In this document: positions 9,031 to 51,250 of the stretch, piece by piece | How positions within the stretch are numbered: the stretch's first letter is position 1 | How the letters are laid out: each line of letters begins with the position of its first letter | NCBI GenBank assembly: GCA_002189035.1 | Contig: NEEC01000010.1 | Coordinates: forward strand, 372,001 to 436,000 | Length of the DNA: 64,000 nt | Direction of reading: 5' to 3' | Source of the DNA: Utricularia gibba | Taxonomy: Eukaryota > Plantae > Magnoliophyta | Position numbers and translations under genes: made by a program | Notes under the pieces: model-generated | Seen by the model: the letters and a program-made list of their open reading frames with translations, nothing else | Told to the model about the DNA's origin: nothing | Database searches by the model: none

Positions 9031-9039
9031 TAATTTCAA

Positions 9040-9062
9040 CTCCCTAGCAACGGCACCAAAAA
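9040..9062 (-). other. Athila primer-binding site
   Basis: Reverse complement TTTTTGGTGCCGTTGCTAGGGAG matches the Athila PBS consensus TTGGCGCCGTTGCCGGGGA; adjacent to the LTR end. Confidence 0.75.
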
Positions 9063-9063
9063 T

Positions 9064-9538
9064 TGGATGCGTGTTATTTCCACAACAAATTTTAAAGATT
9101 TTTAAAACTCGTAAAACACAAATGCGTCTTCATTTCAACTCCCTTTAGTCCTGCTGTGACTTGAAGTTTCTTGAAAGAAAGCTTCTATTCCGACACTAGT
9201 ATGCTAATGATTTCGCCAATCAGAAACTCTCGTGTCCCTCACGTCAAGGCGCATGATTAAGCGTTTGCAGTGTTCAAAAAATCAAGGAGATGTCAGTTTT
9301 GGAAGATGCATTTTCTTGCCATCTGCTGCCTTCTTTCTCTCACTTCCTGCCACATGTGCGCCTTTAGAAAAACTTGAAGAAAACTAGACAAAACATTAGA
9401 TAAAATACAAGATTTAGGAAAATTACCCTAAACTAGATAAAAACCTAAATCTTATATTATAAAATCCTAACTAAAAAATTCTAATCATATTTAGATATAA
9501 AAACAACCTAAATTGTAGTGAGAAAATGACACTTAACA
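9064..9538 (-). mobile_element. Short, diverged Athila LTR (TGTTAAGTGTC...CACGCATC family)
   Basis: Both termini match the 1.3-kb family LTRs; polypurine tract (PPT) TTTAAGTGTGGGGGAATA on one side (9539-9556) and PBS on the other. Confidence 0.75.
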
Positions 9539-10289
9539 TATTCCCCCACACTTAAATCATGCTTGTCCTCAAGTATGAAAACAGATAGACAATCCATAGA
9601 TATAGCAGTACCTAACGCATGATGTATGACTAAGGTAATCTATTTCTGTCTAACTGCATGTATCACCTTCTATTTCCTTCCAAACTCTTTAAATCAATTT
9701 AAAGCATGCAACTCAAACAACATAATCGGGAAAGAGACAGTTCGAGATCACTCTCAGATTTTCAAAAAGTTTGGGCCACAATGACTTATTCCTCTGCCTT
9801 TTTTTTGAATAAGGACCCCCTCTCTAAGGAAGAACTTTCTAGACTATGAAACCTTATTCGTGGTTCATAAGGAAAGATTGTGTCATCTATGGTTTCGCCA
9901 TGCAGTTCTTACCTTTGGCATCCTTTCTTTTTTAAATGAGACGTGTCACTAGATCGTGGATATACAAAAAAATTGTGAGAGCAATCCTAAACAAGTCTCA
10001 GCCCTAATGCATGTCATAAAAGCAGGAAATTAAGAGTAAGGAAAAATCTAAAAGGCTTGCTAGCAGCAAGATAAGTCTAAGCACCCTAATCATGGATCAG
10101 TTGTAGGGAATACCTAAGTATGGATGTCATCTAACTTAGGGAGCAGACTCAAAAGATAAAAAGCAAACATAGAAATAAAACATACGAAATATTGTCCAAT
10201 TACGGCAATGAAAGATAGTTCGTTCAATAGAGAAGAGCTCCTTCCCCACATTTAATTTTGAGGATGTCCTCATCATCAAACATGTTGGA

Positions 10290-11110
10290 GGTTAGCTTAG
10301 TGATGGCGCGGCATAGAGGTGATGAGGGTGTCTAGTTTGGATGACAGTGTGGTGATCTGGCACTCAGATCTTGAAGAGCAAACAGGAGGTTGCGTTACCT
10401 CAGAGGAGTCACCACATGGATCTACAATCATGTACGGTATCACGGTGGTCTTACTCTTTGTTCCCGCTTGGACACAGCACGTCCTCCAGCCTCCTTGAGG
10501 GGGCTACAGTGAAAAAGATCAACTAGGTCAAGGCATCTACCTTGGGTGTATTGGCAGTGAGATCCACATTGAGGTGCATTGAGAGCTTAGTGATGAGGGA
10601 TGCGAATGGGAGCACTTGTTCGCTTCGCAATGCCACATGATTCATGTGCGTGGTGATCCACCAGCCAAGGTTGATTGGGATCTTCTTCATCATAGCCCAA
10701 AAGAAGAACACTACCACCTTGGAGACCACATTGGTGCCTTGGCGGGTGGCAGAATAGCATCCTCCGAAATACCTATTCAAAACTAATAGCACAGGAGCCC
10801 TCAAGTGATGGGTCTTGAGTTTGGAACTGAGGAAAGGTGGCTCATAAACAAACATACAACCATAAGCACTATGAACATCGAAAGATGACAGATAATCAAT
10901 TGCAAATAATGAGTGGAAGTCAATTCATCCTCAGACACAAAACCAAGAGCGACATTGAAATCATTCACAAAAAGTTCAAAATCTTTCCCACCTTACCGAA
11001 AAGAAATGAGAGGTTCTACAATGGGATTCCCTTCAACATCATCAAAAGTAAACGTTGCGTCAAACTCAAAGAGCACTCAAAGACCGGTTTTGGAAAAACA
11101 TGAAGATCAA
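10290..11110 (-). pseudogene. Athila env-like / additional ORF remnant
   Basis: VVFFFWAMMKKIPINLGWWITTHMNHVALRSEQVLPFASLITKLSMHLNVDL fits the Athila extra-ORF pattern; it lies between integrase and the PPT. Confidence 0.7.
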
Positions 11111-12108
11111 CTTTTGAAATTCAGATGAGCTAACACAGGAGCATGTAGATGAAAAAAAACAAGATGTAGCGACTAGTTAATGCATTAAAAAGGGCCTGAG
11201 ATTTTTTTTTTGGGAAACTTGACAGTGTTCTGGAGTTGAGTCCAGGCAAGAGATTCCAACAAACGATCTCGCCAAAACTTTTGTCGCCCACGTTATCCTT
11301 TTCCATGCTTCCTATTGGTTTGGGCGGCGTTGATGGCCTGCTCTCCGTCTTGGAACGTTAGTGGTGGTCCTTCACTAGTAGCTCCTTATATTTCTGCAAT
11401 CCACAAATCCACTTCAGAATCAATGTTATCATCCTCACCTTCTCCTTCCGCATGGGTGAGCATCTACATTCAGCAGCTGGTGGGTTGGCTGCCTCTTCTT
11501 CTTCTTCTTCCTCCAAGTCGTTCAGTCCGAAATCCTCATCAGAGCTATCAGTATGGACCTTGATCGCAACAGCATCTTGCTCCAGTGTATCATCCACAAC
11601 AGGGTCAAGTGTGGCCTCTTTTTTTGGGTTGCAGCTTGCATTTCATGGGTTGCTGAAGTTCCTCGTCCTTCCACGGGAGGTACAAAATAGGAGAAAGTTC
11701 TACTAAGGGAGCAGTAGAAAATAAAAGAGAAAACTCGTAGGAGGAAGTTTCCAGTGGAGGCACAGACTAGCATTTGTGAGGTCTCGGCAAGGGTGAAGCA
11801 GAACAGCGTTTGTTCATCTGTGATGGACCTTCAATGTTGGACTTGCGTCGCCCAGCTGTGCGGGGTTTCCTAACAGGGGTACAAAGAGATGAAACAGAGG
11901 AGGTTCCCTTCATGGCTGGTTGATGTGGTGGGTTGCGAGGTTGAGGAAGAAGGTAAAATGGAAATTTTAAGAAGTGGGCGTAATGTCTTACGCAAGAGTG
12001 AGGGAAGTGGGTTAGTGGAGGAAGTAGTGGTGTGAATGGGGAAGAGGGAAGTTATGGTGAGAGAAGGGAAAGTAAAACTGTCAATTTCTATTGGTAATGA
12101 TGTGTAGG

Positions 12109-13398
12109 TGTTGCGTGTTGTTTCCTCAACAAATTTTAAATATTTAAAACGTAAGACACTAAAAAGTGTAGTACGAGTATCGATCACAGGGAATTGTTTT
12201 TCGTGAAAAGTGTTTTGTAAGAAACTTCTACAAAATGTCACGGTTTTGTAAAAGAGGGTTTTTAAGATGCATAAATGAAAGTTACAACCTAAGTGATGGG
12301 CCTTGACTGCGGGACGCAGTTCCTGGAAATAAGACTCCATCTCCTTCTTTTGTCCGTCCTTGCCTCGATTTTCACCGATTTCTTCCGAATAGCTGGTTAT
12401 AGGAGCAAGGAATAGCCTACTCTCCCTTACACTCTGATTGACAAGGAGGCACGAGAATAGCCTCATGTGATTCCCCCTTCGACGATTAGGAAGACAAGAG
12501 GATTGCCTTCGATTGCCTTCAAAACCGAATTGTGCGCGTGTGCCCAGCTGTTGCCAATGGCCAGTGGCAGGTACGAGTTCACAACCTCTCCATTGTTGCG
12601 GTACCTAGGCCACAAACAATATGCTATTTCCCTCGAACCAGCAAGGTTGGAGTTGGTGCTCTTCACCTTGATCTTCACCAAAATCCACGAGAAGTGGCCT
12701 ACTACTCATGGACCTTGACTAAGAGTCGTTACAGAAAGACTACAACAAGAATCGTGGAAGTATGCGGAATCCGAATTGAATTCAGTGAAGAACCGAGTGT
12801 ATTGCTCAAGACTTGGAAGGAAACTTCATTTACTTCCCAGAAACTAAAGATTTTTAGCCCGAAAGGGCCATGGAAACAGAAATGAAAAGAAATTAAGTGT
12901 TCTTCCTCCTTGAGAGGAGGAAGAACTCAAAAGTTCTAAGTACAAGAGAAATTGTTCGAAAAGTCCGAAACTAAGTGCTCCAAGTGGTTTTTATATGACT
13001 TCCCACGTGCATTAACTCCTTTGGATCCCCTTCGCATCATTCCTTCTGTCTTGCGTGCACCACCAGACTTTCTTTGCATGCAAGTTTGCGCCTAATCATT
13101 GCTGCAGACTCTGACATGTCGTAACTCAGGGGCCTTGACTAGTGTCAGTCTTCCGCCCAGAATCATTCCAACTCGCGTACAAGGCATGAAAACTCAGAGT
13201 CTAACACTCTATGACAGTCTCCTCACATGTCTCGGTTAAAGTGTGAGAAAAAAAGACATAAAATATACACAAAATGAGAAAATAGGAATTTTGTAGTAAA
13301 AATTAAATACTTAATAACAAGACTCATAATTTGGGCGACTTCATACATAATTAACACATAATAAAACCTAATAATTAACTAGAAAATGACACTTAACA
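12109..13398 (-). mobile_element. Athila-family solo LTR, 1290 bp
   Basis: TG...CA termini; perfect 5-bp TSD GTAGG (12104-12108 and 13399-13403). Confidence 0.92.
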
Positions 13399-16129: not shown

Positions 16130-16937
16130 ATGGCTCTGACTGGAAAGAAAGATGTGAAGAAAGATGTGGCTCATTACATTTTTGCTAAGATTGGAGAAAA
16201 GGAAATCCCAAGGGCATTGGTTGATCATGAAGCAGCGATAAACCTGATGCCATTGGACATGTACGAGTCTCTAGGACTTGAATTCTTGAGGAAGACTGTT
16301 ACGGGTAAAATCGGTATCTGGTAGGAGGCCCATTTAAGGTGATAGGTGCAATCGGGGATGTCACACTTAGTCGCGATTTTCAGGGTTTATTTGATTGAAG
16401 TAAAAGTGAGCAAAGATTTTTACGTGGAAACGCCGAAAAGTGGAAAAACCACGGAGCTACCGGAGCTCACCAGAAAAGATTTCCACTAGATGAAGATGGC
16501 GAAGACGGGAATAGAAGTTCCAGCCCCTCTTTTTCTCATAGTTCCTTCTATTTATAGAAGGGATCAATCTGACCGAATCCTGACATCTGCAAATGTCGGT
16601 TGCTTTCTGCATCTGCTATACGATTTCTCTTTTTAGATATCGGCCGCCCGTTATGCCGTAATTCGGCCGCTTTTCAGACTGCGTCATATGGCTATACCTG
16701 TCAAATTTCTGAGAGATATCGGTCTGTCGGTTGGCATTATCCCCTCAAAGTCCCTTTTTGCAGCTTTTCAAAATCCGATTAACCTTGGCCGACTTTATCC
16801 CTCATCATTCAGCCCCTCTGATTCGTCGATATTAGCCTTTTTGGGGTAAAACTGGGGATTAGAACTACTACGATACCGATTCCTGAACTGGCGCTTCCCC
16901 CAAAGAAGCCACATGCCGTTCTCTGCCACACGTCGGC

Positions 16938-17821
16938 TGATAACGCATATTTTTGAGTAGCTCAATACATATAATTTACTCATTTTGCGCTACAAAAATT
17001 AAGTTTTATTGCCTAGTTTCGTATTTTTGCGCATAAGCACCGTAATTGTGTTATTTTAGTCTTAGTTGATTTAGTCCCAACCTTCTAATAGTTTTATTCG
17101 AGCAATGCAGTGTAGATCGCAACACAAATCCCAAGGAGCTGAACATGCACAATGTAGTGGCAGAAGATGAGTCCAAAAGTTTGAAAAGTGGTGCACACAA
17201 AATCCAAGGAGAAAAAAGGGAGATTTTGGACAACAAGAGGGAAAGGTGGAGAGAGAAGGCATATCTCCCTTGAAGACTCACTAACACATTTTTCTGGGAA
17301 GGTTTTCTAGGGAGGAAGAAGAAGGAAGACAAACATGAACGAAGCTGAAGTTCAAGATTATTTTCTGTCTTCGAATAACATTACTCCTAGCTAAGAGTAG
17401 CTAACAACCCTAATTAGAGGTAGACCAAAGATTAGGGGGGAAAACAAGAATTCGGGTGGACCTAGACCTTATGAGTTAGTTGTATGATTTGTAGTTTGTG
17501 TGAGTTTGTTTAATGATGAGCATACATCCTCGAGGAGTCCCAAGGCATCACCCATTCCATTCCAGAAACAACCGAACTCTAGAACTTATTACTTTTCTTT
17601 ACTGTATTTCGTTTTAGTTCTGCGTTAGTCTTAGCTAAGACTAATTTTACCAACGTGACATTAATTCCTTGCATTGACCTTCACATAGCAAGCACCTAGC
17701 TCATTGTGTTCGACCCTAGTCCACTATGCTCATAATTTTTTTATGCTTGAATGTGTATTAGGTTATAAATTTATTTGATAGGAAAATTTACATTTACGAC
17801 TTGTGAATTTTTCGTTTATCA
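16938..17821 (+). mobile_element. Athila-like solo LTR (884 bp) nested in the Tat 3' UTR
   Basis: TGATAACG...TTTATCA with perfect TSD TCGGC; the empty site is visible in the sister Tat copy near 51215-51230. Confidence 0.9.
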
Positions 17822-17988
17822 TCGGCTCATCAATGGGATTTTTACATTTCCAAGTATCATTCGGTTCTTCGTCTTTTCAGTTCGGTCTTCTGGGATTTTT
17901 GACGGGTCCCCCTTGTCATTCTAAGTCCTCCACCCTTCCTGGCTCATGCCTCGTTCTAGGGTTTTGGGCTTCTTTCAATTTTTTGAAA

Positions 17989-19876
17989 ATGGGTAGGAGA
18001 TCTAGTGAACTAAGCATCCCCTCCCTTCGCATTCGGTACTCGATCCCTAATGAGTACCAGCTTTCTCATGCTCGGGATACTGAAATCCCTTGGGGGTAGG
18101 TGAGGGCCCCCTGCCTCCGTTCAGCCTCCCAATTCCGCTTGCCTATTTCGAAAGCAGTTTACGCTTCCCTCTTCTTCCTTTAATAGTTCGTTTTCTCTAT
18201 ACCTTTGCAATCCCGATTTACTGTCTCGGCCCAAATTTCATATTCAGCTTTACTACTTTCCTTTTCTATTCGGCCGGTATGGATCTGACTTTGACTCTAG
18301 TAGACTTCTGTCCCCATTGGCCTGATATCATTCCTTTCGACGGCACCGATTCGAGAAACTTTCCTCTCAGCCCCTCTCCGTCACTTCCTCTTGTTTCGGC
18401 TTCATCCTCGATCCCCCCACCTGTTCAAACCGGCGCCCCCAAGAAAAAGAAGAGGGTTAAAGCACTCGCGCACAAACCCTCAAAGAGGCAAAGAGGTAGT
18501 TGGGCTCAGGTTTCCCGAGTTTCAGAATCGGCATTATGCCTTATTGATTTTCCTACTTCCGTTTTAGCTGAAGAGATGGCTCGAAGAAACTCCCTGGAGG
18601 ATTCGGTGATGGCGCGGTTCTCTGTCGAGATGCAGAGGGCACAGGAACCCGAGGTGCCCTCCCCTGCACAGGTTTGTCTTCTATCTAACAGTTACTGCGA
18701 ATTCCCGTTTATAATCTTTTTCAGTTTTTCTTTCAGATTGATACGTTTGGAGCTCAGCCGGACGCCACCGATCTCTCCTTGGGGGAGGATTCAGTAGTAG
18801 AAGTCTCCGAGACTCGGGAGTTGACTCCCCGTCCATCAACCGGAAAAGGGAAAGAGAAACTCCCCATCCTTCAGCCGGAATTGACTTGGGAGTTGATTCC
18901 CATTCCTGATGCGAGATTCTTTTCGGCTGGTGCTTCGACATCAGCTCCCCCAGTTGAGATACAGAGGGATTCTTCCCTTGTGGAAGTAAGGGATAACCCG
19001 GTGCTCCCCCAACCTTCAGTTCTAGCTGAACTAAGGAGAATCCTAGATGGAGCTATGCCTAGTACCTCGGATGTTCGGCTGGAGATGATACTTGAACGGA
19101 TCTAGCAGGTACGCATCCCGTTTCCTCTTCTAAATTCTAAGTAGTCGGTTCTTGACTTGGCAATATTCCTTCAGGCTTTAACTCTTAGATGGGGAGTGGT
19201 TAGAGAGATTGGTTCTCAATCGGAGGTAGTCTCTCGGCTTCAAGCCCAGGTTGTGGCTCAGGATGCCCAGATAAAGTTGATGGAGGAGGAGGGGAGTTCG
19301 CTGAAGACCGTTTTAAGGAAACGCACCCGCCAGGAGGATGAATTGTGGAATGTGGTCGAGGAAATGGGAAAGGCGGTTGACGACGCTAAATCGGAGAGAG
19401 AAGGCTTCAAAGTCCGATTTAAAGAGGCAGAAGTGGAGTTAGAGCATTCCAGGGACCGCATCTCGGCACTAGAGGCCGAATTGCTTGATCAACAAGCATC
19501 TCGGCAGGGTCTTCTGAATGATTTTGTCAACTCGGCCTGTTTTGCCGAACTCTCCAATATCTATGCAGGAGACTTAATCAGCTTACATCTATACCGTCAG
19601 AGGCGACAGTTTAGCCGGGAATTCAGGCTTTCAATGATGGATCCGCGATTCGACAGGGTAAACCCCTTGACGAAGGATGAGAACATGCTTGATGTTATCG
19701 CGGATACTTTCCAGGCCCCGGAGTTCGCGTTCGACACTGATCGGGAGCGGCTGATTGCACTGATTAAGGCGAGGATAGGGCGAGAGAATGACGTCAAGTT
19801 GAGAGCCAGGATGGAGCGACATACCGGCTCCTCTACCAATCCTCCCATTAATCTCCAGAGTCCTCTAGCACTTTAG
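17989..19876 (+). pseudogene. Antisense additional ORF of the Tat element: Transposase_28-like domain + coiled coil, two introns (18672-18736, 19109-19174)
   Basis: LRIRYSIPNEY..YFESSLRFPLLPLIVRFL..LGPN; C-terminal heptad-rich region; both GT-AG introns are phase 0 and join the flanking ORFs in frame; frameshift near 18092 and TAG at 19103. Confidence 0.8.
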
Positions 19877-20685
19877 TGACTTTTTTAACTTGGTGTATTT
19901 TCCCCCTGTTGTGGGGCTTCTTGAACATTTTTGATATCCCGGTTCGGGATTTCCTTACTCCATTTTTTGCGCATCATTTCTGCCTTTGATGATATCACAT
20001 TTTGGGGGAAACCATGAGTTGGTTTTTTATGTCTATCACGTGTTTAGGCTTGGAAGGTTCGCCTATGCTTTTGTGATCCGGGGGTGGGTGTCTCTTCGCC
20101 AACCCTTTGGTTGGGCTTTTTGATTTTTGTTTGCCTTAGTATTTCCTCATGCGTGCTGAACCGCTGCTAAGGAAGTAGGTCGTAACCCCACATGGGTTGA
20201 GTGACTTCCCCAATCCGGAAGGGCCCTCTTCTGGCCGAACCCCATTGTTTTGAGCATGGGTGGATTTGCTTTGGGTGCTCTTGTCGTCTCGAGATTTCGA
20301 CAATAAGGTCAATACTTAAGGGCTTTTCGGGGCTTACGCATGCGGTTTACGAACCAGTGCCCGAATTATACCAGGGCTTATTCTTGTCACCGACTTATGT
20401 CTGGGTTTTGGGAGATCACATGTATATATATCGGGGAGATCCCGAGTTGGTTTGCCGTATCCCGCAGGGGATACCGATTTGGGGGATTTGCCTGGGCTCA
20501 CGTTGCTTGGCCAGAGCTTGTGGTTTAAATCTTTTAGGGTCTGCCTGGGCTTACGTGACTCGGCCAGGGCTTATGGTTTCGTTTACTCATCTCCACTTTG
20601 GAGGAATTTACAGGCGCTTGAGTGTTTTGAGGGAGAGAACACTGAATTCTGTGCAATCCTGTGATGGAGATTGACATTGAGCTAG

Positions 20686-23600
20686 TTAGGTATATAATTT
20701 CCTTAGGTGTGATGCATTCCACGACCTTGAGAATTCCACGCCGTCTAATTGTTATAGACGATACACTCCTTTTCCGATTACCCTTGAAATCTGATAAGGG
20801 CCTTCCAACTTGCGATCTAATTTTCCAACATGTCTCTGTGGTTGAATGCTTCGGAGCACCAAATCTCCCTCATAGAATTCCCTTGGGGACACCGACTTGT
20901 TATATCTCTTCTCCGTTCTCCTATGATGAGCCCCTAGTCGGCTATAGATGCTTTGCCGTTTTTCTTCCAATAGCTCCAACTCCAGTTTTCGCAAGTCAGC
21001 ATTTTCTTCTTCATTATAATGTTGTACCCGGTAGCTTTTCAGGGTTAGTTCGATAGGGCATACGGCTTCTGAACCGTAACCCAATAAGAAGGGGGATTCT
21101 TCCGTGGTGGTTCGAGGGGTGGTGCGATATGACCACTGCACTTCATCCAAGCGATCTGCCCATGATCCTTCAAAATCTTCAAGCTTAGTCTTTATTCCTA
21201 GCCGGAGGGTTCGATTCGTTACCTCTGTGAGACCATTGCTCTGCGAGTGATACACCGAGGTGAAGTTGTGCTCGATCGTATATTTATCAATGAATGCCTC
21301 CATTCTTCCCCCAGCGAATTGGGTTCCATTATCGGTCACCAGTTCTTGAGGGATTCCGAACTGGATGAAGATATTTCTCCACAGAAATCGAATAACGGTC
21401 TCCTCTGATATTTTTGCCACGGCCTCAGCCACCACCCTTTTGGAGAAATACTCGACTCCCACGATGACAAATTTTCTTTGGCCGAGGTTTGGGGGAATGG
21501 CCCCATAATATCCACTCCCCATCGATCGAACGGGCATGAGAATGGAAGAGAGGTCAGGTTATTTACCGGCTTTCTCGGTGTACTCGCATGGTATTGGCAT
21601 ACTTTGCATTTCTTCACCATTTTGGTAATATCCCGCTCCATAGTTGGCCAATAATACCCGCTTCTCAAGGCTTTCCTGCATAAGGATCGTATGCCAACGT
21701 GGCTGCCACATTCCCCTTCATGCAGATCGGTTATAAGTTCTTGAGAATGCTTTGCCCCGATACACCTCAAGAGGGGTCCATCTAAGGATCTGCGATAGAG
21801 AATTCCATTTACCAGTGTATATCTCTTTGCTCTAATCTCTAACTGTCGGGCTTTGGATTTATCAAATGGTGTTTCTCCATTTCTTAGATACCGGACGTAG
21901 GGTGATGTCCAATCATCGAGGTGACTCAGCTGTGGAGAGATATCATTTCCTGGTTGCTAGTAATATAATTCACTGCTTGCAAGGTCACTGAAGGTTGATC
22001 CCGCAGCCGAAACCCTACAGAAAATCGGGCGAGGCTATCTGCGGATCCGTTCTCCTCGCGCGCCACGTGCGACAGGGTGAATTCCTTGAAGGTCTTTGCC
22101 AGCTCCTTTACCTGAATATGGTACAAAGCCATGAGGGAGTCATGGGTTTCGTATTCACCCGAAAACTGCCCTTGCGTAAGTCGTGAATCAGTGTAGACGT
22201 CGAGCTCCGCAACTCCTAGTTCCTTGGCAATTTTCATTCCTTCAATCAAGGTTTCATATTCGGCCACATTGTTGGAGGCTGGGAATAAGAATTTCACCGT
22301 GATATAAATGTGTTCCCTGTCCTGGGTTCGGATGTCTATTCCTCCTCTAGGGTCGTTGTATGTCGAGCCATCTACGTGCATGGCCCATCGGTCATTGGCT
22401 TCTTCAAAACGGTCTATAGGCCTGGTCATTTCGACCACAAAATCGGCAAGAGGTTGAGCCTTGATTGCTGTTCTCCATTTAAACTCAATATCTATTGTAC
22501 TCAATTCGACCGCCCATTTGGCAACCCTTCCGGAAATCTCTAGTCGAGATAGGATACTCTTCAGAGGCTGATTGGTGAATACCATGATGTGCCGATCTTG
22601 GAAATATGACTTCAGTTTTGTGGCCGCCATCTTCACAGCCAAGATGAATTTTTCTGTCACCGTATATCGGGTTTCGGATGGTAACAGAACCTTGCTCACA
22701 TAATACACCGGCAAGTGGTTATCTGCCGAGATGGTTGTCAACACTGCGCTGACTGCAACGGGCGATATAGACATATATAGTCCTAAAGGCTCTCCTGCTT
22801 TCGGTGCCACAAGAAGCGAGGGTGATTAGAGATATTCCTTGAGTTTTTCAAAGGCAATCCGGCAATCCTCGTTCCATTCTAAAGCATTTCCATTTCGCAA
22901 GACTTTGAAGAAGGATGCCGACTTATTGGCTGACCGAGATATGAAACGGCTGAGGGCAGCCAATTTACCCGTGAGGCTCTGGTACTCCTTGATTGTCCTT
23001 GGGGGTTGCATTTCGCATATTGCCTTAATCTTCCCAGGGTCAGCCTCGATTCCTCTCTCCGATACGTAATGCCCCAGGAATTTTCCACTTTGCACCCCGA
23101 AGCAACATTTTTGTGGGTTGAGTTTTAACCCGTATGACTGACACAAAGAGAAACAAGAATCCAAATACGCTAAGTGGTCTTCTTCATTCATAGATTTTAC
23201 GATCATATTGTCCACATATACCTCCATCGAGGTGCCGATTTCAGAAGAGAATATTTTATTTACCAACCTCTAATAAGTCATCCTAGCATTCTTTAAACCG
23301 AAAGGCATGGCCACATAACAGTAAACCCTATCCTTGGTGTAGAAAGTGGTTTTCGGTTGGTCTCTCTCGGCAACGGAAATTTGGTGGTATCCCGAATAGG
23401 CATCCATGGTGCTCAGGAATCGGGATCTGCCAATGGCGTCCACTAGCTTGTCAATCTTTGGAAAAGGATAGGGGTCCCTTTCGTAGTAGGCGTTGAGGTC
23501 GGTGAAGTCAATGCACATCCTCCACTTTCCCCCAGGCTTCGGAACGACGATTGGGCTTGATATCCACTCGGAATACTGCATCTCCTTCACATAACCGGCT

Positions 23601-24564
23601 TCCAAGAGCTCCCTTGTTTTTTCTTTGATAATTTGGCACTTTTCCTCTAAGAAATGCTATTGCCTCTGCCGAACCGGTTTTGCCCCAGGGTAGGTATCAA
23701 TGCGATGCTCGGCGACAGATTGATCAATGCCTACAAAGTCTGCAGCAGTCCAGGCAAAAATATCGGCGTTCTTCATCAAAAGTTCAACTAACCTCTTCTC
23801 AAATCCGGTGTCTAGATTGGCACCAATGCAGGTTGCTTTCTGCGCATCTTCTGGTACTAGTTGCACCGACTTGTACCCTACTGGTTCCATTGCTTGTCTA
23901 GGGGTTCTCAGGGTTCCTTTTCTACCATCATCACTCTCGGCCTTTTCGCGCAGGGTCTCGGCAAGAAGATACATAATAGGACCGGGCGGTTGGTTGGACA
24001 ATGCCCATCGTGCAAATGACCCCTAGATGTCGGGAATTTAATTTTCAAATGCACAGTGAAGGGTATCATACCAAATTGGTTGATGCCGGGTCGCCCGAGG
24101 ATAATGTTGTATGAGACCTCTGAATCCAGGATCAAGAATTCCAACCTCTCGGTTCGGTTCTGCCCTGCCGCTCCGAATGTTACGGGCAGGGTTATTTTTC
24201 TGATAGTTTGCACGGCCCGCTGGTCGAAGGCGTATAACTCCATGCGCACGTGGCGGATGTTTCCTTCGTTGGATGATGCCAGTAACTCGGCTACTTCCTT
24301 CTTCATGATGTTGCAGGAGGATCCTTGAGCAATAAGAATCCTTCTTACCTTGGTGCTCACGCATATTCCCGATACCCCCAAAGGTTCATCTCTTGCGGCT
24401 GGGGTGACTGGGACGTCTCTGCTGGAGAAGCTGATCTCTTCTTTTTCCCAAGCAATTCTCTCAGTCGGACCATTTCCGATCTCGAAAACTTCTCCTCTTC
24501 TGGCTTCTCGCGCGTCAGCGCTTCCGTCCTGAGCCGGATCGGTGGCTGTGCTATTTTCCGCCAT
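20686..24564 (-). pseudogene. Tat pol: protease, RT, RNase H, archaeal-type RNase H, integrase (fragmented)
   Basis: RILIAQGSS..YNIILGRP; WRMCIDFTDLN..MPFGLKN; YVDNMIV; RYTVTEKFILA; WAMHVDGS..NNVAEYE; HHCC zinc finger; FDRWGVDIMGP; SNGLTEVTN; no chromodomain. Confidence 0.93.
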
Positions 24565-25218
24565 GATCCGTGATTAACGGGTGGCTGCTGTGTGTTTCTT
24601 GAGTGGGGCTATGGAACGTCGCCCTACGGTGGGTGCCAAAAAATGTTACGGGTAAAAACGGTATCCGGTGGGAGGCCGATTTAAGGTGATAGGTGCGATC
24701 AGGGATGTCACACTTAGTCGCGTTTTTCACGGTTGGTTCGATTGAAGTAAAAGTGAACAAAGATTTTTATGTAGAAACCGCCGAAAAGCGGAAAAACCAC
24801 GGAGCTAGCGGAGCTCACCAGGAAAGATTTCCACTAGATGTAGATGGCGAAGACGGGAATACAAGTTCCAGCCCCTCTTTTTGTCATAGTTCCTTCTATT
24901 TATAGAAGGGCTCAATCTGACCAAAACCTAACATCTGCAAATGTCGTTTGCTTTCTGCATCTGCTATACGATTTCGCTTTTTAGATATCGGTCGCCTGTT
25001 ATGCCGTAATTCGGCCGCTTTTCAGACTGCGTCATATGGCTATACCTGTTAGATTTCTGATAGATATCGGTCTGTCGGTTGGCATCATCCCCTCATAGTC
25101 CCTTTTTGCAGCTTTTCAGAATCCGATTAACCATGGCCGACTTTATCCCTCATCAAAGACCAACAGGAAACTGATTCTGGCAATTAGAGTGTAATACCAA
25201 AAAAAATTGTTGAGGACT

Positions 25219-26790: not shown

Positions 26791-27351
26791 ATTTAGGAAG
26801 TTCAAGGCTTGTATGAAGTTAATGAGTTATAGTAATATCTGTAACATGTGTTTATTTGTACTATGAAATGTTGGATATATAACAAAGAAAACTTTGGCAT
26901 AACTATTTGAGGGATACTCTATATGTTGTTTAAGGTCTTCTGGTTTGAAGCAATGGAATTTATTTCGCTTCCAACATTAAACAAATCATTTTGGACCGAT
27001 TTGTGTTTTCTCCCAGATCTGCAGGTCTTGGATATGAGGGGTGCATTTGGATGGATTCTCACACTAAAACTATGGGACTATCATATGCATGACTCTCATG
27101 ATGTCATATCCATGACCACGTGCATATTAAATATTAATTATGATTATTACTGCACTGGGCTTTTTTGAAGAGGAATCACGTGGTGATTTTTCAGTACGAT
27201 CTCGGCTGGGCGCATAATTGGAGGAGTAAAAGAAAAGGAAGATGCTAGTTAATTTGAAAGTACTCATCTCTCTTCTAATTAATTTGAAAAATATCCATAG
27301 TCTCAAAACATTTTACAAAATATTCATTCTTAATATTTCTTTTAAAATATT

Positions 27352-27851
27352 TGTTGTGGGTAAAATCGATGTCCGATGGGGGGCCGATTTTAGGGTGATG
27401 TAATCGGGAATATCACACCTAATCACATATTTCACGGTTGATTCGGTTGAAATGAGAGTAAGCGAAGATTTTTATGTGGAAGCTGCTGGAAGACGGAAAA
27501 ACCACGGAGTTATCGGAGCTCGCTGGAAAAAATATCCACTATACGGAGGTGGCCAAGAAGAGGATACAAGTTGAAGAGTTCTCAGAGTCCACCTTTTCTC
27601 CTTAATGGTTTCTTCTATTTATGGAAGAGCCCAATCTGGCCGAATCCCGATGTCTGCTAATATCGATTGCTTTCTGCATCTGCTATACGATCTCGCTTTT
27701 CAAATATCGGCCGCCTGCTATGCCATGATTCGGCCGCTTTTTAGACTGTGCCTCTGATTTGCATCATTCGGTCGACTGGCGCGATCCTATCAGAACATAT
27801 CTTGACAGCTTTTCAGAGGTCGGCTTATTATACCCGATTTGTACCCCATCA
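27352..27851. mobile_element. Tat-family solo LTR (500 bp) inserted in the left MULE TIR
   Basis: TGTTGTGGG...CCCCATCA; perfect TSD ATATT; homologous to 16297-16807. Confidence 0.88.
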
Positions 27852-28987
27852 ATATTTTTTTATTTTTATATATACGATTATCTATATATCTATATGTATA
27901 TTAATTATTTTATTAAAATTCTGAAAAGCAATAATAAATATCATACTATATGATTTAAATGGTATATTATTGTAAAAAATTGTAATATATAATATTAATA
28001 AATTTAAAAGACATAAAATAAATTTCGATATAAATATTTAGTAATTATGTATCCATATATTGGAATATTGAATCATTTCATAAAGAATACGTAAAGATTA
28101 TTTATAATTATCATATAAATATTTGGTATCTATATGCATATTTATTATTTTATTAAAATTGTATGAAACAATAATAAATGCCATATTATATGATTTAAAT
28201 TGAATACGATTGAAAAATATTGTAATAAAATTTGATATATAATATTATTAAATCTAAAAGACATAACATAAATTTCAATATAAATATTTGGTAATAATTA
28301 TCCATATATTATAATATTAAATCATTTGGTAAAAAAATACGTAAATATTATTCACAGTTATTATACTAAATGTTTTATCATGTCTCTATTAAGAATATAA
28401 TTGATGTATAACAGTTTATTTGAAATATATATTTTTTAAAAAATAACTAAATATAAATATTTTTCGAACGCTTCTTAGAATCACAAGCAATGCTCAACAT
28501 ATTCTGGGTGCCACTTGAATAAGGAGCCGCACCCAACAAAGATCTCATGAGTGAATACATATTGCATCACTCTTTGAAAATATGAGCATTTCAATAGAGT
28601 GATATAGTTTCGATCAATAATTTTAGAATTATCCCCAAAATATTTTATCCATTAAAGCAACTAAATCTTTGTGTTCATAATAAAATTACATTGTGTATAT
28701 TAGTAATTTAAACAACAATGATAAATATAATTTGATTTGTATTTAAACTATATATTATTAAAAACATTTTGTAATAAAATGAGATATATTGTATTGTGTA
28801 ATTTAAAAATATAAATAAATATCGATATTACTATTTGGTAATTATTTTCAATATAGTTTTATAGTAAATCAATACGAAAAATGCATAAATACTGTATAAT
28901 TTTTGGACGCTGCTAAGAATAACAAGTAGCATGCAACATTTTGTGGGCGGCGCTTCAAATAAGAAGCAGCATCGAGGCGCGGTGTTT

Positions 28988-30069
28988 CTAGTAATACATT
29001 ATACATAACTCTTTCGAAACATCTGCACGTCCCTTGTCCATGTACACAATATCTGCAAGTAGACCGTTAATATCTAAAATGCTTAATTTCTTTGGACTTG
29101 AAACATCAACTTCCTGCAAAGTGAACATTGGATACCTTGTTTCATATTGGTAGATGGTTTTCTTCAATTGGTCTACTTCCTTTCTGGCCTCTTAAGGCTC
29201 AGAACGCAATTGCACAACATCATGATCTTCTACTTTTATGGAGCAAATGAACTGACAGTCTCCTTCTCATAAACATCATTATGTGTTGTATGTTATCCTT
29301 CTACCTCATGTTTTTCGAGATGAGTGTGCACTATTCTTATCCTATGAGGAGTGCCACACCAAATACGTATTGCACCTCTGACATTCGAAAATGGTGGTTC
29401 AATATCTCTCCATCTCATGTCTTTTGTTATTAGTAATGCTCCAAGACACTGTTTGTCATCTTCATCCAACAATTGGATACTTTATAATATAAAAAAATTA
29501 TTAGTTGAAAACATAAACAATGTTAAGAAAATCAAAAGAGTCTTACAAAGGAAGCATTTTCTATCTATTGGTTTTCCAACATTGAACGAGGTTGAAAGAT
29601 GTCTAGGTATTCTTATTCGCATATCTTCAGGTGGAGTGACCCATACGAAACTAGTCCACTAATTTCCATCGGAGTCTCGTAAACCTGTAACTATTTTAAT
29701 TCCCGCCTTTGATGATATTGTGAAATGATTTGTGTGAGCAACCTTGGAACATTTTGCAATGCTAAACAATGCAACAACACTAAGTGGATATCTATCATTT
29801 TCACATAACCTCATAAATGCAACAATATTTCCAATAGAAGCTGATGTTAAATGAGATAATGGAAGCCGCACCGAACGAAGCACGGACTCTACAAAGGGTT
29901 GGATAGGTAACCTTAACCCACATCTGAAATGTTCGGTGCTAACTGCAAAAGTACGAGTGCCAACACGCTGTGGTGGTTGATCTAAAATTTGTTCATCTTC
30001 TTCTTTGTCTGATATAATGAAATTCTCAGGAATTAAGTATCTTTGTCTAATCTTGTCTTCAAAAGTCAT
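28988..30069 (-). pseudogene. MULE cargo gene: Transposase_28-like domain - coiled coil - start of an FCP1/NIF HAD domain (truncated)
   Basis: IRQRYLIP..PP..FAVSTEHFRCGLRLPIQPFVESVL..LSHLTSAS..IVAFMRLC..IVTGLRDSDGN*WTSFVWV; candidate intron at about 29480-29545; EARKEVDQLKKTIYQYETRY; KKLSILDINGLLADIVY at 29042-29092. Confidence 0.82.
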
Positions 30070-30519
30070 CTATCATTGTGAATGTTAGTGGAGTTAGTAA
30101 AAATACAACATGTATAGAATATAAAAAATAGAAAGACGTCATATACCTTGAATGAATTGGTTGGATTTGAAATGGTATGCGAGAAGAATAAGATTTTTCT
30201 CAAGAAAAAAAATTTATGTGAAGAAAAATTCACATACATGGTAAAGAAGAAGGTGAAGGTTGGTGAAGATACGACGGAAGAGGATAAGAGGGTATAGGGT
30301 TTGAAGAGGAAGTTTGATGTGTATTTAATTGAGTTAGTTATATATTTAATTTTTTGAAATATTTTGAATTTTTCCAATAATATTTGAAAAAATTAATTAT
30401 AATTTTTCATAACAAGGTCATGAGTATATTTTTAATAACAAAATAGGACATTATGACTACAAATTGTAAAGAAGTAAATAATTAAGACTTTATTATTACA
30501 AAATTTTCACTCTCTAAGC

Positions 30520-30820
30520 ATTGGGCATTGTTTGCTGTACTAAGCAGCACCTAGACATCCATGGACGTCACTTACAGATCATAAGCAATGCCTAAGGATG
30601 CTATGGGTGTTGCTTATGGATATAAGTGATGCCTAGAAACGCACTGAGCATTGGTTTATAATGCCATGGGCACTACTTAGATGTATAAGCGACGCCCAGC
30701 TCCACCTTTGGGTGACGCTTCATGATATGAACGACGCCCATCATGGCCAGTCGTCGCCTAGAAATATTTGTAGCTTCCAATAGTGTCGTGGGCGTGACTT
30801 ATGTGTCTATACAGCGCCCA
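30520..30820. repeat. Tandem array of about 7 imperfect 32-bp palindromes TGGGCRYYRCTTA-N6-TAAGYRRYGCCYA
   Basis: Examples: TGGGCACTACTTAGATGTATAAGCGACGCCCA and TGGGTGTTGCTTATGGATATAAGTGATGCCTA; period about 40-45 bp; the same motif occurs at 28465-28540, 28905-28980 and 33040-33370. Confidence 0.85.
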
Positions 30821-31099
30821 AGAGGTGAATGAGTGATGTTTTGTGTGAGACAATATAAAATAATTTATATGACATTCTTTAAAATACAATGATAATGACA
30901 TTCTAATTCATTTTTTACTTACAGAGAAAAATCTCATAACTCTTTCAAACTTAGACTTTTTTCCATGAACACACTATGTAGTAGAGGTACCAAACTCATG
31001 TGTATCATACATTTGTTGTGTCGCAGAATAATGCACCGATGATCTAGGTTGCACATCGATGGGGTATTGGTTCGATGGGATGATGCCTGAAATGATGCA

Positions 31100-32800
31100 C
31101 GATGTCTCTGTGACTGACTTTCTTGAGTGAACTCTGTTTCAAGTGACTCGTCTCGTCTGCCCGTATATCATCTCGATTTTCTACCTTGATAATCCATTGG
31201 CATTGTAAACCTCATCAATGGGGTCTCCCATGGCAGACATTTTTTTTTGTGGTTGGAGTCATGGACCATTAAAAACGGTGCTGGCGGCCATCTATCCTCA
31301 AATTGCAATGGCTGAATTTGATTCTCATATATTTGAATCTGCTGGTCAAGATGTAACATGGAATTGATCACATCCATATGATCAATATTTAGCATTCGGC
31401 ATGCCTTCACACATGAAGTTACAAGTGAGTATGATGCAAAAGATAAAATACATAATCAATGGAGTCGAGCATGTACCTGCTGGGCATGGGAGCATGGAAT
31501 TCCAATATTTTGCCACTTCCTACACTCGCACATGCCTTGACTAACCATCACTATTAACTTCTTTTGTTTTCCATTTTTTCTGCGAGTGGTAACCATAACC
31601 TTCTTTTGAGCATGATCAACTACTTTTATTGATGCATGAGTGATTGGTTTATTCCAATGTGAGTATAGTTTATGAGGTTGGTCTACGAACACAATGTATC
31701 GTTGACGTTGATGTAGTACCTTTTGTAGTCTATCAGAAAAGTAGCGCTCACATCACGCAAAATTTAGCCTACTCATAAAAAGGAAAGCATTGGTAACTAT
31801 ATTTGTGAATATGCATCTAGAATTAATGGTACCTATGCCAACGAGCACAAAGGTAGGTGTCTCATGCCCTTTAATATTCCATTCATGCCTTCAACTTGAT
31901 TTGTTGTTAAGATCCTGTACCTACGTAATATGCAATAATGTAGATTAAACATTAGATGAGCATGGAAATATTTATGACTGCATCTTGCTCCTTCATCATA
32001 CACTAGAGTCTAGGATTCAAGTTGTAACCGATTTAGGTACTCCAATTCTTCTAGGTGTATTTTGTAAATTTCTTCCATGTAGAGCCTCAACTTAATTGTC
32101 GATGTGGCATACACGTCTTTCATAAATAGTTCACGCATACATGGAAATTTGTCATACTTGCTGAGAAAATTGGACCGCAAGTGACGTATGCAATATCTAC
32201 GTGAACCTCCATAGTCAGGCATGAATGTCCTAACTTTTGATGTCGCATTTTCTATAGAGAGGCACTGATCTGATATACTACAACATGCCCAGTTAGCAAC
32301 CATATGCCGATCCAGTAATTGAATAAACCAATGCCACGAGTCATCATTTTCACTGTCAACAATCGCAAATGCAAAAGGCAAGAGGAGACCAAAAGTGTAC
32401 TATTATAGCAATCAATAATTTATGAGAGTATCGCGAATACAAATGGGTGGCATCCACCGTGATCACAGGTCAACAAAAATGGAATGTCTGAATGCATTAT
32501 CCAAAAGACTAAAATACGTATTTCAGTATCTTGGTTTCATATACGTCCGGCTGCCTATGTTGATATTCCACAATGATGCTTGGATTTCTAAATTGTACTT
32601 CCAAAAGAAATTGAGGTAGAAGGGGTACTGAAGACTCCCATGTCCCATAAATAATTTTAGAGCTTTTTTGCATGTCATACCACGCTCGATAATAGGAGAC
32701 ACTATAGCCGGTTTTCTCTTTTTCCGATCCCAATCTAGGTAATTTATCCCGAGGAAAAGCCATGTAGAAATCAAGGAAGAAGAAAGGGAAAAGAGAAGAA
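31100..32800 (-). pseudogene. MuDR/MULE transposase remnant with SWIM zinc finger
   Basis: VSYYRAW; PFAFAIVDSENDDSWHWF..RRYCIRHLRSNF; TTNQVEGMNGILKG; CECRKWQNIGIPCSHA. Confidence 0.92.
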
Positions 32801-34190
32801 ACAATAGGAGATGGTCATGATCTTTGTTTTGAATGTTTTGTATGAAAATTTCGTAGTAGTGACAGACTTTTAGTTTTTTGGTTGATAATTTTGAATGTTT
32901 TGTATAGCACTACACTTTTTGTTTAGGGAGAAATCTCAAGTTGTTGATCTCATATGTATAAATTCAAAATTGTGTCACTCTATTGGAATGCTCATGTTCT
33001 AGAAGAGTTATGCAGTATGTATTACTTATGAGACCTTTCATGAGCGCAACTTCTAATTGGAAGTGACGCCCAAAATATGTTAGACGCTACTTATTATTCT
33101 AAGCGGTGTCTGATACATCTTGGGCACTGCTTGTTATTCAAAGCAATGTCCAGAATATATACATTAGTTTCTTTAATAAAATCGAAAATCGAATATATAA
33201 CATTCTCAGGTTGTTGATCGATATTGTATCACTCTATCGGAATACTCATGTTTCAAAAGAGTGATACAGTATGTATTCATTTATGAGACCTTTCCTAGGC
33301 ACGGCTTGCTACTCGAAGTAGCGCCCAGAATATGTTGGACGCGATTTGTGATTTTAAGCAAAGTTCGAAAAATATTTATGTTTAGTTCTTTTATAAAAAA
33401 TATATATTTCAAATAAATTGTTATGCATATCAATTATATCATTAATAGAGACATGATAAAAATATTTTAGAATTAAACATAATGTGCTGAAATCATTTAA
33501 TAATATTTACATATTTTTTACGAAATGATTCAATATTACAATATATATAATTATTATCAATTATTTATATCATTATTTATTTTATGTTTTTTAGATTTAA
33601 TAATATTATATATCAAATTTATGACAATGTTTTTCAATAGTATACAATTTATATCATATGATATATTATTGATTATTGTTTATTATAATTTTAATAAAAT
33701 AATGAATATGCATATCTATATATATATATAATTTCATACATAAAAAAAACAGAACAAAATCAAAAAATACATTGACATGTCAGTGTATTTCATTTTTTTG
33801 ACATTTATTTATAAAAAAAATATAAGGATGAGTATTTTGTAAAAGGTTTTGAAAGAATGAATATTTTTCAAATTAAATTGAAGATATATGAATATTTTTC
33901 AAATGGACCTACGGAGATGCCCAAATTGTATGGGTACCCTACCCTACCCTCCCCTGGATGGAGCTTTTGAAGAACTTGAGAAGATCCTTGGACGATTGTA
34001 TTGGAAGGCAGGGTTTTTGTGACAATGGAAGGGAACCAACCATTTTCCCCATTGCTTGCTAGTTGCTTCATTTGCTGATGTTGCGTATAAAAAAATGGGT
34101 AGGTTGATTTGGCCATTATTAACGAGCGCCTGCCTGGGTCAGTTTGTTCACAAGGGTTGGGCTGTGCTGAAATGTGAGGCGGAGAAGGGC

Positions 34191-35019: not shown

Positions 35020-36978
35020 TCAGCTCCCCTGGTTCATTGCAGCTACGGCAGCCTCTATCTTCTGCTTTAAAACCTCTTTGTCCTCCTCTCTGCCCTAAAA
35101 CATTAAAACCCCACTGAGTTTCTGCTTGAGTTTGGGATTTGCTGAGGGAAGAGGAAGAGAGAAGAAGAAGAAGAAGATGGTAGGTTTTCAATGGGCCTCC
35201 CAATGATTTACTTGAATAAATTAATCCTCCCCTCCTCCCCCCTCACATCACAAACACACAATAAAATAATAAAGAAAGATGCGCATTTATTACACACAAT
35301 AAATTATAAATAACGTTACTTTCATTAACCTACAATAAAATTCAATCAAGCATGTTGTAAAAACTTGAAATATAAAGACCAGCTTTTTCAGTGTAAACTG
35401 TTCCTCTGTGGTTGTCGCAGTTAAGGAAATGATGGTCACGTGGATTTTCTAATTTTCTTGCAAGAAAGCCCACCTGTGATTGATAGGTGCTGTATCCCAA
35501 ATGCAAATAAAAATACCTTTTTTCTACTCACTGCAATTAAAAATACTTTTAAACACCTTTCGACCTACTCAGGCGACCCTTTCAATCGATGAGTCTTAAC
35601 ATGATATATGAACATCTGATTGAGCGACCAATACGAGTTTTGAGGTTAGTTCCATTCAGTCCGATAAAAACACAGAAACAAACAAACACACGGCACGTTG
35701 AAAGAAAATGACAAGTACCTCAAGCATAGCGTTCATGTGAAGCTTTCCTTGGAGCGCAGTAGTGTTGCATGTGATAATCTTCAGGTTCAGCGATTCCAGG
35801 ACTTGGAAGAGGTGGACGATTGTTTGTCTTCTTTCTGTGGAGCTTAAGCTTACAATCATTGTGTTGCCTCCCATGCTCGTCACGTTTAGCTGCCATCAAC
35901 CATTCGGATAAAATTCATACAAAATCCCCGAAAGTTTTCTTCGTACGATCCGAAAAACTGAACATGTTACTAATGCTACCACGTTTTTGTTACAAAACCG
36001 GAATTGACTTTTGTTTAAAAATAAGCAGAAAAGCAAGAAAAAAAATGATTTGATTAAAAGGGGGAAAGAAGAAGTCGGTGTTTTTAATTGCTAGCTGTGC
36101 AGTAAACAGACCTCGAGGACTTCAATGGGAGAAGAGTCAGAAAATGATGTGACTGTTGCCTTTGGGATTGAACAATCTGCACTCGCCTCTTGATCAGATT
36201 GAGGGTTTCTTCTTTGGTTAACAGACTGCAACTCATTGATTTCTCCCTGGATCTTCTTCTCTTCTTCTTGAAGTGACTGTATGAAGCTGATGGCATCTTT
36301 CACTGTCGAGGCCTTATCCATCTGCATCAGACAAGCAGCAGCTTCACTCGGGCAGACTTAGAATCTCTAAGCAGTACTTCTTCTAGATTTAAAGGATTTA
36401 TAACCAAGGGAGTGTTTCTTGGTTTTGACTTTGATTTTCTTTTGAAAATTACAATGTGATTCTAGTTCTAAATTATTGAAAAATATAGAAGCATGAAGGA
36501 AACATAGAATGAGATTTTATTGAACATTTCATGAAAGCCAATTTAATTGAGAAGTGGAATTTCAATGGGTAACAAGTGCCAGTCAACAACAAAAGGCCAA
36601 CCTTAGAGATGTTGGGAACAACTGATCTGAGCGCGTAGAGAGTTTCATTGAGCTTCTTCCTTCTGTTTCTCTCGGAAGCAACGGTTTTAGATGCTGCAAG
36701 TGATTGGTCAACGTCCGGAGAGCTGGAGCTGGGATCATTGAAACTGCTGGAGGAAATCGGATCACTGCAGCCCGATAAGGGTAGGGGCAGGGGCATTTTT
36801 TCAAAGCAACTGCACCACATGAAGCATCTTCGTCCTTAATTAGGCCATAGAGAAGCGAGAAGAAGAAGAAGAAGAAGAAGAAAGCTCCCATTCCAAATAA
36901 ATACCTCTGGAGCTCTTCGATTTCGTGGAACATTTTTGTTTCCCAGTAGTTACTGTAATCATCATGGTCGCCATCCAT
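35020..36978 (-). CDS. bHLH35: bHLH transcription factor with C-terminal ACT-like domain (bHLH35/27-like), 245 aa; exons 36978-36905, 36809-36602, 36321-36112, 35889-35719, 35094-35020
   Basis: SNYWE; SKTVASERNRRKKLNETLYALRSVVPNISK|MDKASTVKDAISFIQSLQEEEKK; IEVLE|LNVTSMG..ESLNLKIIT; all splice phases are consistent (738 nt). Confidence 0.92.
36859..36882. repeat. (GAA)8 microsatellite in bHLH intron 1
   Basis: Direct reading. Confidence 0.9.
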
Positions 36979-42111: not shown

Positions 42112-42630
42112 TGATGAGGTATAAATCGACTTCTGAAAGGTTGTTAAAAGAAGCCCTGACAGGACAACGCCAACCGACATGCCGATATGTGTTAGATATT
42201 TGACAGCGGTGGTGGTATGACACAGTCTGAAAAGTAACCGAATTACGCCAGAACAGACGGCCGATATCTGAAAAGCGAGATCGCATAGCAGGCGCAAAAG
42301 TGATCGACACCTGCAGAAGCGAGGATTCGGTCAGATCGACCTCCTCTATAAATAGAAGAAATCATAATGGACAAAAGGTTCGACCCTAAGCCTCCCAATC
42401 TGTATCTTTCTTCATCACTTTCGACTAGTAAAGAGTTTCTCCGGCGAGCTCTGACAGCTCCGTGGTTTTTCCGTCTTCCGGCGGTTTCCATGTAAAAACT
42501 CTCCGCCCGCCTCTGCTTCTGTTGATTGAGTCGAACAAATCATAATAAAGCATAACGAAGTACGATACTACCAACTTTACCTATAACCCGAAATTGGCTT
42601 TGTCCCAAATACCGATCTTCACCCCCAACA
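42112..42630. mobile_element. Tat-family solo LTR (opposite orientation to 27352-27851)
   Basis: TG...CA termini; 4/5 TSD (TAATA/TAATT); reverse-homologous to 16297-16807. Confidence 0.8.
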
Positions 42631-50541: not shown

Positions 50542-51250
50542 TTTTATGGGTAAGATCGGTATCCGAGATGAGGTCGATTTTAGGGTGATAGATGAGGTCG
50601 GTTTTAGGGTGATAGATGAGGTCGGGAATATCGCGCTTAGTTGTGTTTTTCGTGGTTGGTTCGGCCTGATCGATTGAAACAAGAGTGGAAACCGCCGGAT
50701 GACAGAAAAACCACGGAGCTATCAGAGCTCACCGGAGAAGATTTTCACTAGTAGGAGGTGGCTAAGAAGATGATACCAGCTGAAGAGTTCTTAGGATCCA
50801 ACCCTTTTTCCATAATGGTTCCTTCTATTTATAGAAGAGCTCATTCTGGCCGAATCCTGACGTTTGTCAATATCGGTTGCTTTCTCCCCCTACTATATAA
50901 TCTCTCTTTTCAGATATCGGCCGCCTGCTATGCCGTAATTTGGCCGCTTTTCAGACTGTGCCATACGGCCATATCTATTAGAATCAGACGGATATCGGTC
51001 TGTCGTCTAGCATTATCTCTTTAGAGTCTCTTTTGGCAGCCTTTTAGGAACCGATTACGCTCTACTGATTTATCCTCCATCATTCAGCCCCTCTGATTTG
51101 CCGATATTGGCCCTTTTGGGATAAGTCGGGGAATTAGAATTACTACAACGCCGATTTCTGAGGTGCCACTTTCCACGAATGAGCTGCAAACTGCTTTGGC
51201 CCGACACCTCTGTCACGTGTCAGCTCATCAACATGCCACGTTTTTTCCTG
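50542..51250 (-). mobile_element. Truncated Tat element: 3' LTR, PPT and start of the 3' UTR
   Basis: LTR about 50542-51082, followed by TTCAGCCCCTCTGATT and UTR colinear with 16808-16937 plus 17827 onward. Confidence 0.85.

Follow-up and report, generated by a model that had tools for sequence, protein, structure and literature searches.

The window analysed here, a 64,000-nucleotide stretch of AT-rich plant DNA from Utricularia gibba, was found to carry at 28988–30069, on the minus strand, the remains of a gene which is a real but dead, truncated member of an apparently undescribed family of transposon accessory genes. The gene begins with a Transposase_28 (TRP28) domain and lies inside a decayed MULE. 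TRP28 domains have so far been described only in retrotransposons; here such a domain heads the second gene of a cut-and-paste element. The locus probably represents a MULE copy, one of many, that is dead and has undergone an internal deletion; its second gene would once have encoded a TRP28 module, a helical linker and a C-terminal NIF/FCP1-type HAD domain. If this is true, a fusion of TRP28 with a CTD-phosphatase-type domain in a MULE would show an exchange of modules between transposon classes.

The gene remnant starts at a minus-strand ATG at 30069, which opens an ORF of 136 aa (29659–30069) translated as MTFEDKIRQRYLIPENF...HFRCGLRLPIQPFVESVLRSVRLPLSHLTSASIGNIVAFMRLC... and containing the strings RQRYLIP, HFRCGLRLPIQPFV, LSHLT and IVAFMRLC. 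An in-frame TAG (29659–29661) closes this ORF and the same frame runs on beyond it as WTSFVWV (WTSFVWVTPPEDM...KCFL), the TRP28 exon as a whole being delimited at 29545–30069. After an AT-rich, intron-like stretch follows a middle stop-free block of 59 aa (29296–29472), which is in the frame of the TRP28 exon, ends at a TAA (29293–29295) and gave no family match in Pfam. The last preserved coding block (29024–29191) consists of a charged helical stretch and then KKLSILDINGLLADIVYMDKGR, and is cut at 29023±3. It forms part of a stop-free run of 67 aa at 28991–29191 (EARKEVDQLKKTIYQYETRY...SSPKKLSILDINGLLADIVYMDKGRADVSKELCIMYY), within which KKLSILDINGLLADIVY occupies 29042–29092, on the strand of the TRP28 exon and in a different frame. 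The strings quoted in a preliminary description of this DNA, together with the ATG at 30069 and a TATA-like box near 30340, were all located on reading the sequence, and its predicted 'coiled coil' corresponds to approximately 20 charged residues. The box, TATATAA at about 30338–30344, is unremarkable in DNA which is so AT-rich and is regarded as a putative promoter element only. The stretch that separates the transposase from the second gene (30070–31167) contains this box and, at 30580–30740, four copies of a 15-nt TATAAGCGACGCCCA-like motif with a spacing of 41–63 nt.

The first block is a true Transposase_28/TRP28 domain, as had been proposed from the letters of the sequence. In the Pfam search, residues 44–91 of the 136-aa ORF matched PF04195 with an E-value of 1.5e-8 and a score of 35.2 bits, the gathering score of the family being 26.2 bits. 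A custom profile built from eight database TRP28 proteins matched residues 37–130 with an E-value of 2.6e-21, thus reaching the premature stop, well outside the 69 residues of the Pfam core; as this profile did not include the correct-frame translation of the ORF, the value is not due to self-matching. Alignment with nine database TRP28 proteins identified a common N-terminal R-x-R-Y-x-I-P motif. When the ORF was compared with the consensus positions of the Retand proteins (G21, P25, L34, P46, N47, and F55; PMC11963269), the G, P, L, and F were found to be kept (GLRLP...L...AF), while the P-N pair is replaced by S-A, the Retand LTPNS reading LTSAS in the MULE-borne ORF.

The predicted fold is in agreement with this identification. 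An AlphaFold (AF2) model of 29662–30069 (minus strand), calculated from the TRP28 alignment, had a pLDDT of 82 and a pTM of 0.73 and superposed with a TM-score of 0.78 on ESM-Atlas clusters labelled PF04195. The model also resembles the Atlas cluster 'At3g60930-like' (DUF1633 + Transposase_28 + DUF601) with a TM-score of 0.76, so TRP28-type folds occur in other plant protein architectures as well. Fold searches gave no significant match among solved (PDB) or viral structures, and thus no support for DNA binding by TRP28; a broader search had a best Z-score of 4.2, with recurrent MerR-type winged-helix rows at Z 2.7–3.6, which are too weak to serve as evidence. An exhaustive search of 1.8 billion representative proteins with the 136-aa ORF returned 12 weak matches, of which the plant ones were plain Transposase_28 proteins and three were unrelated repeat proteins (PAN, Calx-beta and a third repeat protein). 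The W-x-x-F-x-x-V block that the family conserves comes directly after the TAG at 29659–29661, so this stop interrupts the TRP28 module and the gene is broken.

TRP28 is regarded as a hallmark of one retrotransposon lineage: 97% of recently active Retand clusters carry it in antisense ORFs which occupy the interval from pol to the 3′ LTR, and it is a domain without an assigned function, for which DNA binding is only predicted (PMC11963269). The Retand/Tat antisense ORFs and the MULE-borne ORF share the same domain by Pfam, custom profile and predicted fold, and both have a helical region after it. The MULE-borne ORF differs in that it resides in a class II element, has the orientation of the transposase and leads on to a phosphatase-like stub. 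An ORF with the Retand-type placement, which is not that of 29659–30069, does exist in the window at 18084–18794 on the plus strand, antisense to the remnants of RT, RNase H + RVT_3 and integrase at 20755–23266 (minus strand) of a neighboring Tat/Retand-type gypsy element. It corresponds to the second such ORF earlier announced at 17989, and was recognized by the TRP28 profile (E 1.7e-6) and weakly by Pfam (E 0.058). No DNA similarity was detected between this ORF and the MULE-borne TRP28. The gypsy element itself spans 16297–25029 (minus strand), with LTR-like repeats at 16297–16681 and 24644–25029, and carries a plus-strand coiled-coil-like ORF (19157–19873) besides the TRP28-like one. Further LTR-like fragments of the same sequence are found at 27352–27748, 50685–50962 and 42221–42506.

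The element surrounding the second gene is a decayed MULE. Its transposase survives at 31168–32804 (minus strand) in several frames with stops, comprising, besides typical flanking ORFs, a PF10551 MULE domain at 32013–32381 (Pfam E 1.7e-6, 28.8 bits against a cut-off of 27.6) and a SWIM finger at 31459–31692 which, with 18.4 bits, remained just under its cut-off of 19.6. The left outer TIR (27252–27354) pairs with the right outer TIR (33801–33904) with about 83% identity over 100 nt. Inside these TIRs each side has about 1 kb of subterminal inverted repeats, the pairs being 71–88% identical. The left subterminal region (27860–29013) is partly tandemly duplicated and reaches the breakpoint of the gene; the right region, delimited together with its outer TIR at 32964–33904, was recognized by its inverted-repeat pairing. 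Inverted matches connect 27860–28102 and 28132–28629 with 33499–33749 and 33202–33715, and 28906–29013 with 33003–33110, while direct copies within the left arm lie at 27887–28124, 28127–28375 and 28714–28891. The left arm also contains the LTR-like fragment at 27352–27748, which is 75–82% identical to 16297–16681, 24644–25029, 50685–50962 and, inverted, 42221–42506, and which has no counterpart in the right arm. With the PF10551 and SWIM remnants upstream of the second gene on the same strand and matching repeats on both sides, it was possible to confirm the placement originally described, namely that of a gene remnant within the TIRs of a MULE, downstream of the transposase and in its orientation.

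It might be argued that the gene belongs to a host family, of TRP28-NIF or of NIF only, and is present here by accident, with MULE repeats merely flanking it after nested insertions or rearrangements. No target-site duplication (8–11 bp with at most one mismatch) was detected within ±6 nt of the element ends, although in an element of this age such an absence is weak evidence, and the left arm has indeed been rearranged by the LTR-like insert and the tandem duplications. However, the gene has the orientation of the transposase and is enclosed by the transposase remnant on one side and the innermost margin of the matching subterminal repeats on the other, and one genome holds hundreds of related contigs, which would not be expected for a host gene. 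An accidental host gene is a very improbable explanation.

The contigs in question derive from one DNA run of the same species (X5) and were compared with 28700–30400 of the window. At an identity of at least 80%, 233 contigs were obtained, covering all 30 bins of this interval, with 15 at 99% or more, 45 at 95–99%, 79 at 90–95% and 94 below 90%. One diverged contig extends from motif I to the middle block (29023–29405) with 43 differences and another begins at the upstream border of the middle block and enters the TRP28 exon (29465–29777), with 49 differences. Together these two contigs indicate that the order of TRP28, middle block and motif I is common to copies about 11–16% diverged, and the tiling of contigs with the same order of blocks means that the arrangement is not unique to this locus. 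The differences between the window copy and the contigs are rich in transitions, with C>T at 69 places and G>A at 84, an excess as expected of methylated, decaying transposon DNA.

The same comparison located the truncation. Six contigs agree with the window as far as 29022 and are unlike it afterwards, while six others follow the gene down to 29023–29026 before departing from the window sequence. As contigs depart from the window on both sides, the junction at 29023±3 is private to this copy. On its left it is adjoined by the subterminal repeat DNA, which extends to 29013. The junction cuts the supposed phosphatase domain some 22 residues from its beginning, in the codon that follows ...VYMDKGR. 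A consensus from one loose end reads on in frame past this point, but as it consists of 30 nt from two contigs it carries little weight. The repeats and the diverging contigs bear out the earlier description of the copy as cut just after motif I. An internal deletion would here have fused the gene, directly behind HAD motif I, to the subterminal repeats of the left arm, thereby removing almost all of the phosphatase-like domain. This loss, the premature stop in the TRP28 module and the exon frames which no longer join leave the copy dead, as had been described.

What survives of the phosphatase part is the stub KKLSILDINGLLADIVYMDKGR, amounting to about 20–22 residues of the supposed domain. 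A hydrophobic strand is followed in it by D-I-N-G (LSILDINGLL), the motif-I-like D being encoded at 29072–29074 and the N at 29066–29068 (minus strand). The last block is 44% identical over 48 aa to a second site in the window, 8787–8927 on the minus strand (tblastn within the window, E 1e-4), where a second, strongly diverged and broken copy of the helical stretch and the phosphatase-like gene was delimited at 7981–9030 (minus strand). Motif I of the form DxDx(T/V) with both aspartates is absent from both copies, which read LDINGL in the first and LDINDV in the second; the first Asp is kept in each and the second is replaced by Asn. Motifs II–IV and the remaining Rossmann-like core were lost from the first copy at 29023±3. 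The second copy runs further downstream and includes ...LIFVWDQS... and ...LLIDDSPYK..., which on reading by eye are like later NIF-type motifs.

Assignment of the last block to motif I of the FCP1/NIF type, as put forward in the preliminary description, was only weakly supported. Pfam searches (E up to 10) with the stop-free pieces of both in-window copies gave no match to PF03031, a result which, given how short the pieces are, does not exclude membership, and the PDB sequence search with the two pieces returned chance rows only (E > 0.5) and no phosphatase. Of the two profile matches anticipated for the gene, therefore, the one to PF04195 was significant and the one to PF03031 did not appear on these short stop-free pieces. 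In the Atlas feature search the nearest neighbors of the two in-window pieces, which are 37–44% identical, were NIF clusters, with scores of 0.88–0.90 and 161–188 shared features (0.89 and 188 for the second copy); scores under 0.9 are rated by the tool as leads only. Below the NIF clusters came other HAD phosphatase families (PNK3P, MDP-1). From the language-model neighbors and the homology with the second copy, the stub is probably a NIF/FCP1-type domain. It shares with the FCP1/SCP CTD phosphatases (NIF, PF03031) the motif-I-like hydrophobic strand and D-x-x, with NIF clusters as nearest neighbors, and differs from them in giving no HMM match, in having Asn as the second acidic residue of DxDx(T/V) in both copies and in the deletion of motifs II–IV from this copy.

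The absence of Pfam and PDB support for the pieces would also be consistent with an ordinary Retand-type protein of TRP28 and coiled coil carried in a MULE, with LDINGLL as a chance look-alike of HAD motif I, since Retand-type TRP28 proteins are typically continued by coiled-coil regions (PMC11963269). This is quite unlikely, as two pieces of only 37–44% identity both lie nearest to NIF clusters and then to other HAD phosphatases, and the homologous second copy goes on with the blocks FVWDQS and LLIDDSPYK, which by eye resemble later NIF motifs.

Whether the blocks belong to one gene was considered on several grounds. All of them lie on one strand and keep one order, and a start codon of its own opens the first. 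On reading by hand, simple GT-AG introns cannot bring the blocks of this copy into a single frame: one possible join was found from TRP28 to the middle block and none from the middle to the last block. The same exhaustive search with the 136-aa ORF yielded no database protein with both TRP28 and NIF, and homologue searches with this ORF, with the two motif-I pieces aligned and with the 92-aa piece of the second copy returned nothing, such searches being blind to longer fusions. Metagenome scans found no relatives, and neither these nor the protein databases provided an intact copy of the TRP28/NIF-like gene. The gene neighborhoods of seven database TRP28 proteins held no NIF-like sequence by annotation, Pfam or tblastn. 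The single spliced transcript which had been anticipated did not appear, three runs presumed to be RNA containing no contig that matched 28700–30400, although this does not prove silence. All the blocks probably belonged to one spliced gene, although their colinearity, their common strand and the tiling by diverged contigs support this only weakly. The preliminary description was aware of no Transposase_28-FCP1 fusion, and a full-text literature search likewise revealed neither a description of one nor a paper in which PF04195, PF03031 or FCP1 is connected with MULEs, Harbingers or DNA transposons.

It is well established that MULEs pick up pieces of host genes and string them together, and like the Pack-MULEs this element contains a non-transposase, possibly chimeric coding sequence. 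It could accordingly be supposed that unrelated fragments, one of a retrotransposon TRP28 ORF and one of a host NIF gene, were brought together as junk, never formed a working gene and have spread only with the element. The lack of an intact ORF and of a transcript, the frames which cannot be joined here and the second copy with its phosphatase-like part and no TRP28 (none within 3.5 kb upstream, as searched with the TRP28 profile over 9000–12600) are all in keeping with this. In contrast to Pack-MULEs, however, the element has a transposase of its own, represented by its remnants, and the cargo recurs in many diverged copies. The TRP28 block is hardly a random fragment, as it opens with an ATG of its own and spans the module in full, N-terminal motif included, and at the DNA level it does not resemble the Retand copy of the window. 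More of the contigs of at least 80% identity also cover the coding blocks than cover the putative introns or the upstream spacer, which fits coding constraint, although depth is a poor measure of it. Assembly from junk is accordingly judged improbable, and preference is given to the dead copy of a multi-copy MULE whose second gene joined TRP28 to a NIF/FCP1-type domain.

On the same strand as the second phosphatase-like copy and about 1.5 kb upstream of it, a remnant of PF20167 Transposase_32 ('putative plant transposon protein') was noted at 10526–10992 (minus strand; E 3e-8, below the cut-off).

Accessory genes are a familiar feature of MULEs, examples being VANB and VANC of VANDAL elements, the Ulp1-MULEs of the KAONASHI type and maize mudrB, and VANC is a MULE second gene which acts against silencing. 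As in VANDAL, KAONASHI and mudrB, the gene described here is a second gene beside the transposase in an autonomous-type MULE, while its content of TRP28 and a NIF-like domain differs from all of these, and a sequence relationship is not to be expected. On the transposase strand, the ancestral gene would have coded for TRP28 at the N-terminus, then for a linker containing a short charged helix, and for a HAD domain of the NIF/FCP1 type at the C-terminus. In HAD enzymes the residue two positions after the first Asp is the general acid/base. Its replacement by Asn suggests that the domain, if NIF-like, was likely a poor enzyme or a phospho-binding module. In an intact ancestor TRP28 might have served for targeting, perhaps by contact with nucleic acid or chromatin, while the D-x-N NIF-like domain may have been a weak phosphatase or may simply have bound phospho-Ser/Thr tails, the CTD of Pol II among them. 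Such a protein could then have helped the expression of the element or shielded it from silencing. The TRP28 module may, as the preliminary description proposed, have passed from a class I to a class II element, and the phosphatase part may stem from a host gene. This combination of targeting by TRP28 with CTD binding or weak dephosphorylation is a tentative proposal and, on balance, a doubtful one. A still broader and somewhat less likely scenario would make TRP28-NIF a long-maintained accessory protein of several DNA transposon superfamilies, common to or derived from Retand, and a new class of counter-silencing factor. TRP28 would bring this protein to the DNA or chromatin of its own element, where the D-x-N domain would bind or slowly dephosphorylate the CTD of Pol II, or that of partners of Pol IV/V, and so favor transcription of the element or block RNA-directed silencing.

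The nearest functional analogy, and it is an analogy only, is offered by the host modules of PMD and PP7, in which MAIN/MAIL1 act with PP7L in trans and MAIL3 and VvMAIL2.2 are fusions, linked to gene expression and TE silencing (PMC7156037). As in TRP28-NIF, a transposon-derived domain of unclear biochemistry is there paired with a phosphatase-type domain. The two differ in that the domain is PMD and not TRP28 and the phosphatase is of the PPP type and not of the HAD type, and in that host genes with genetics are set against a dead, transposon-borne copy. The PMD-PP7 case is evidence that a pairing of this kind is capable of controlling both gene expression and silencing (PMC7156037). If the fusion is true, it would provide a first biochemical handle on TRP28 proteins, pointing to phospho-protein or polymerase-tail biology. 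Beyond a deletion derivative with an exactly located breakpoint the locus itself contributes little, the value lying in the family.

About 2 kb from the right end of the MULE, ORFs at 36091–36820 (minus strand), read by eye, resemble a bHLH transcription factor (...ERNRRKKLNETLYALRSVVPNISK...) and probably belong to a host gene.
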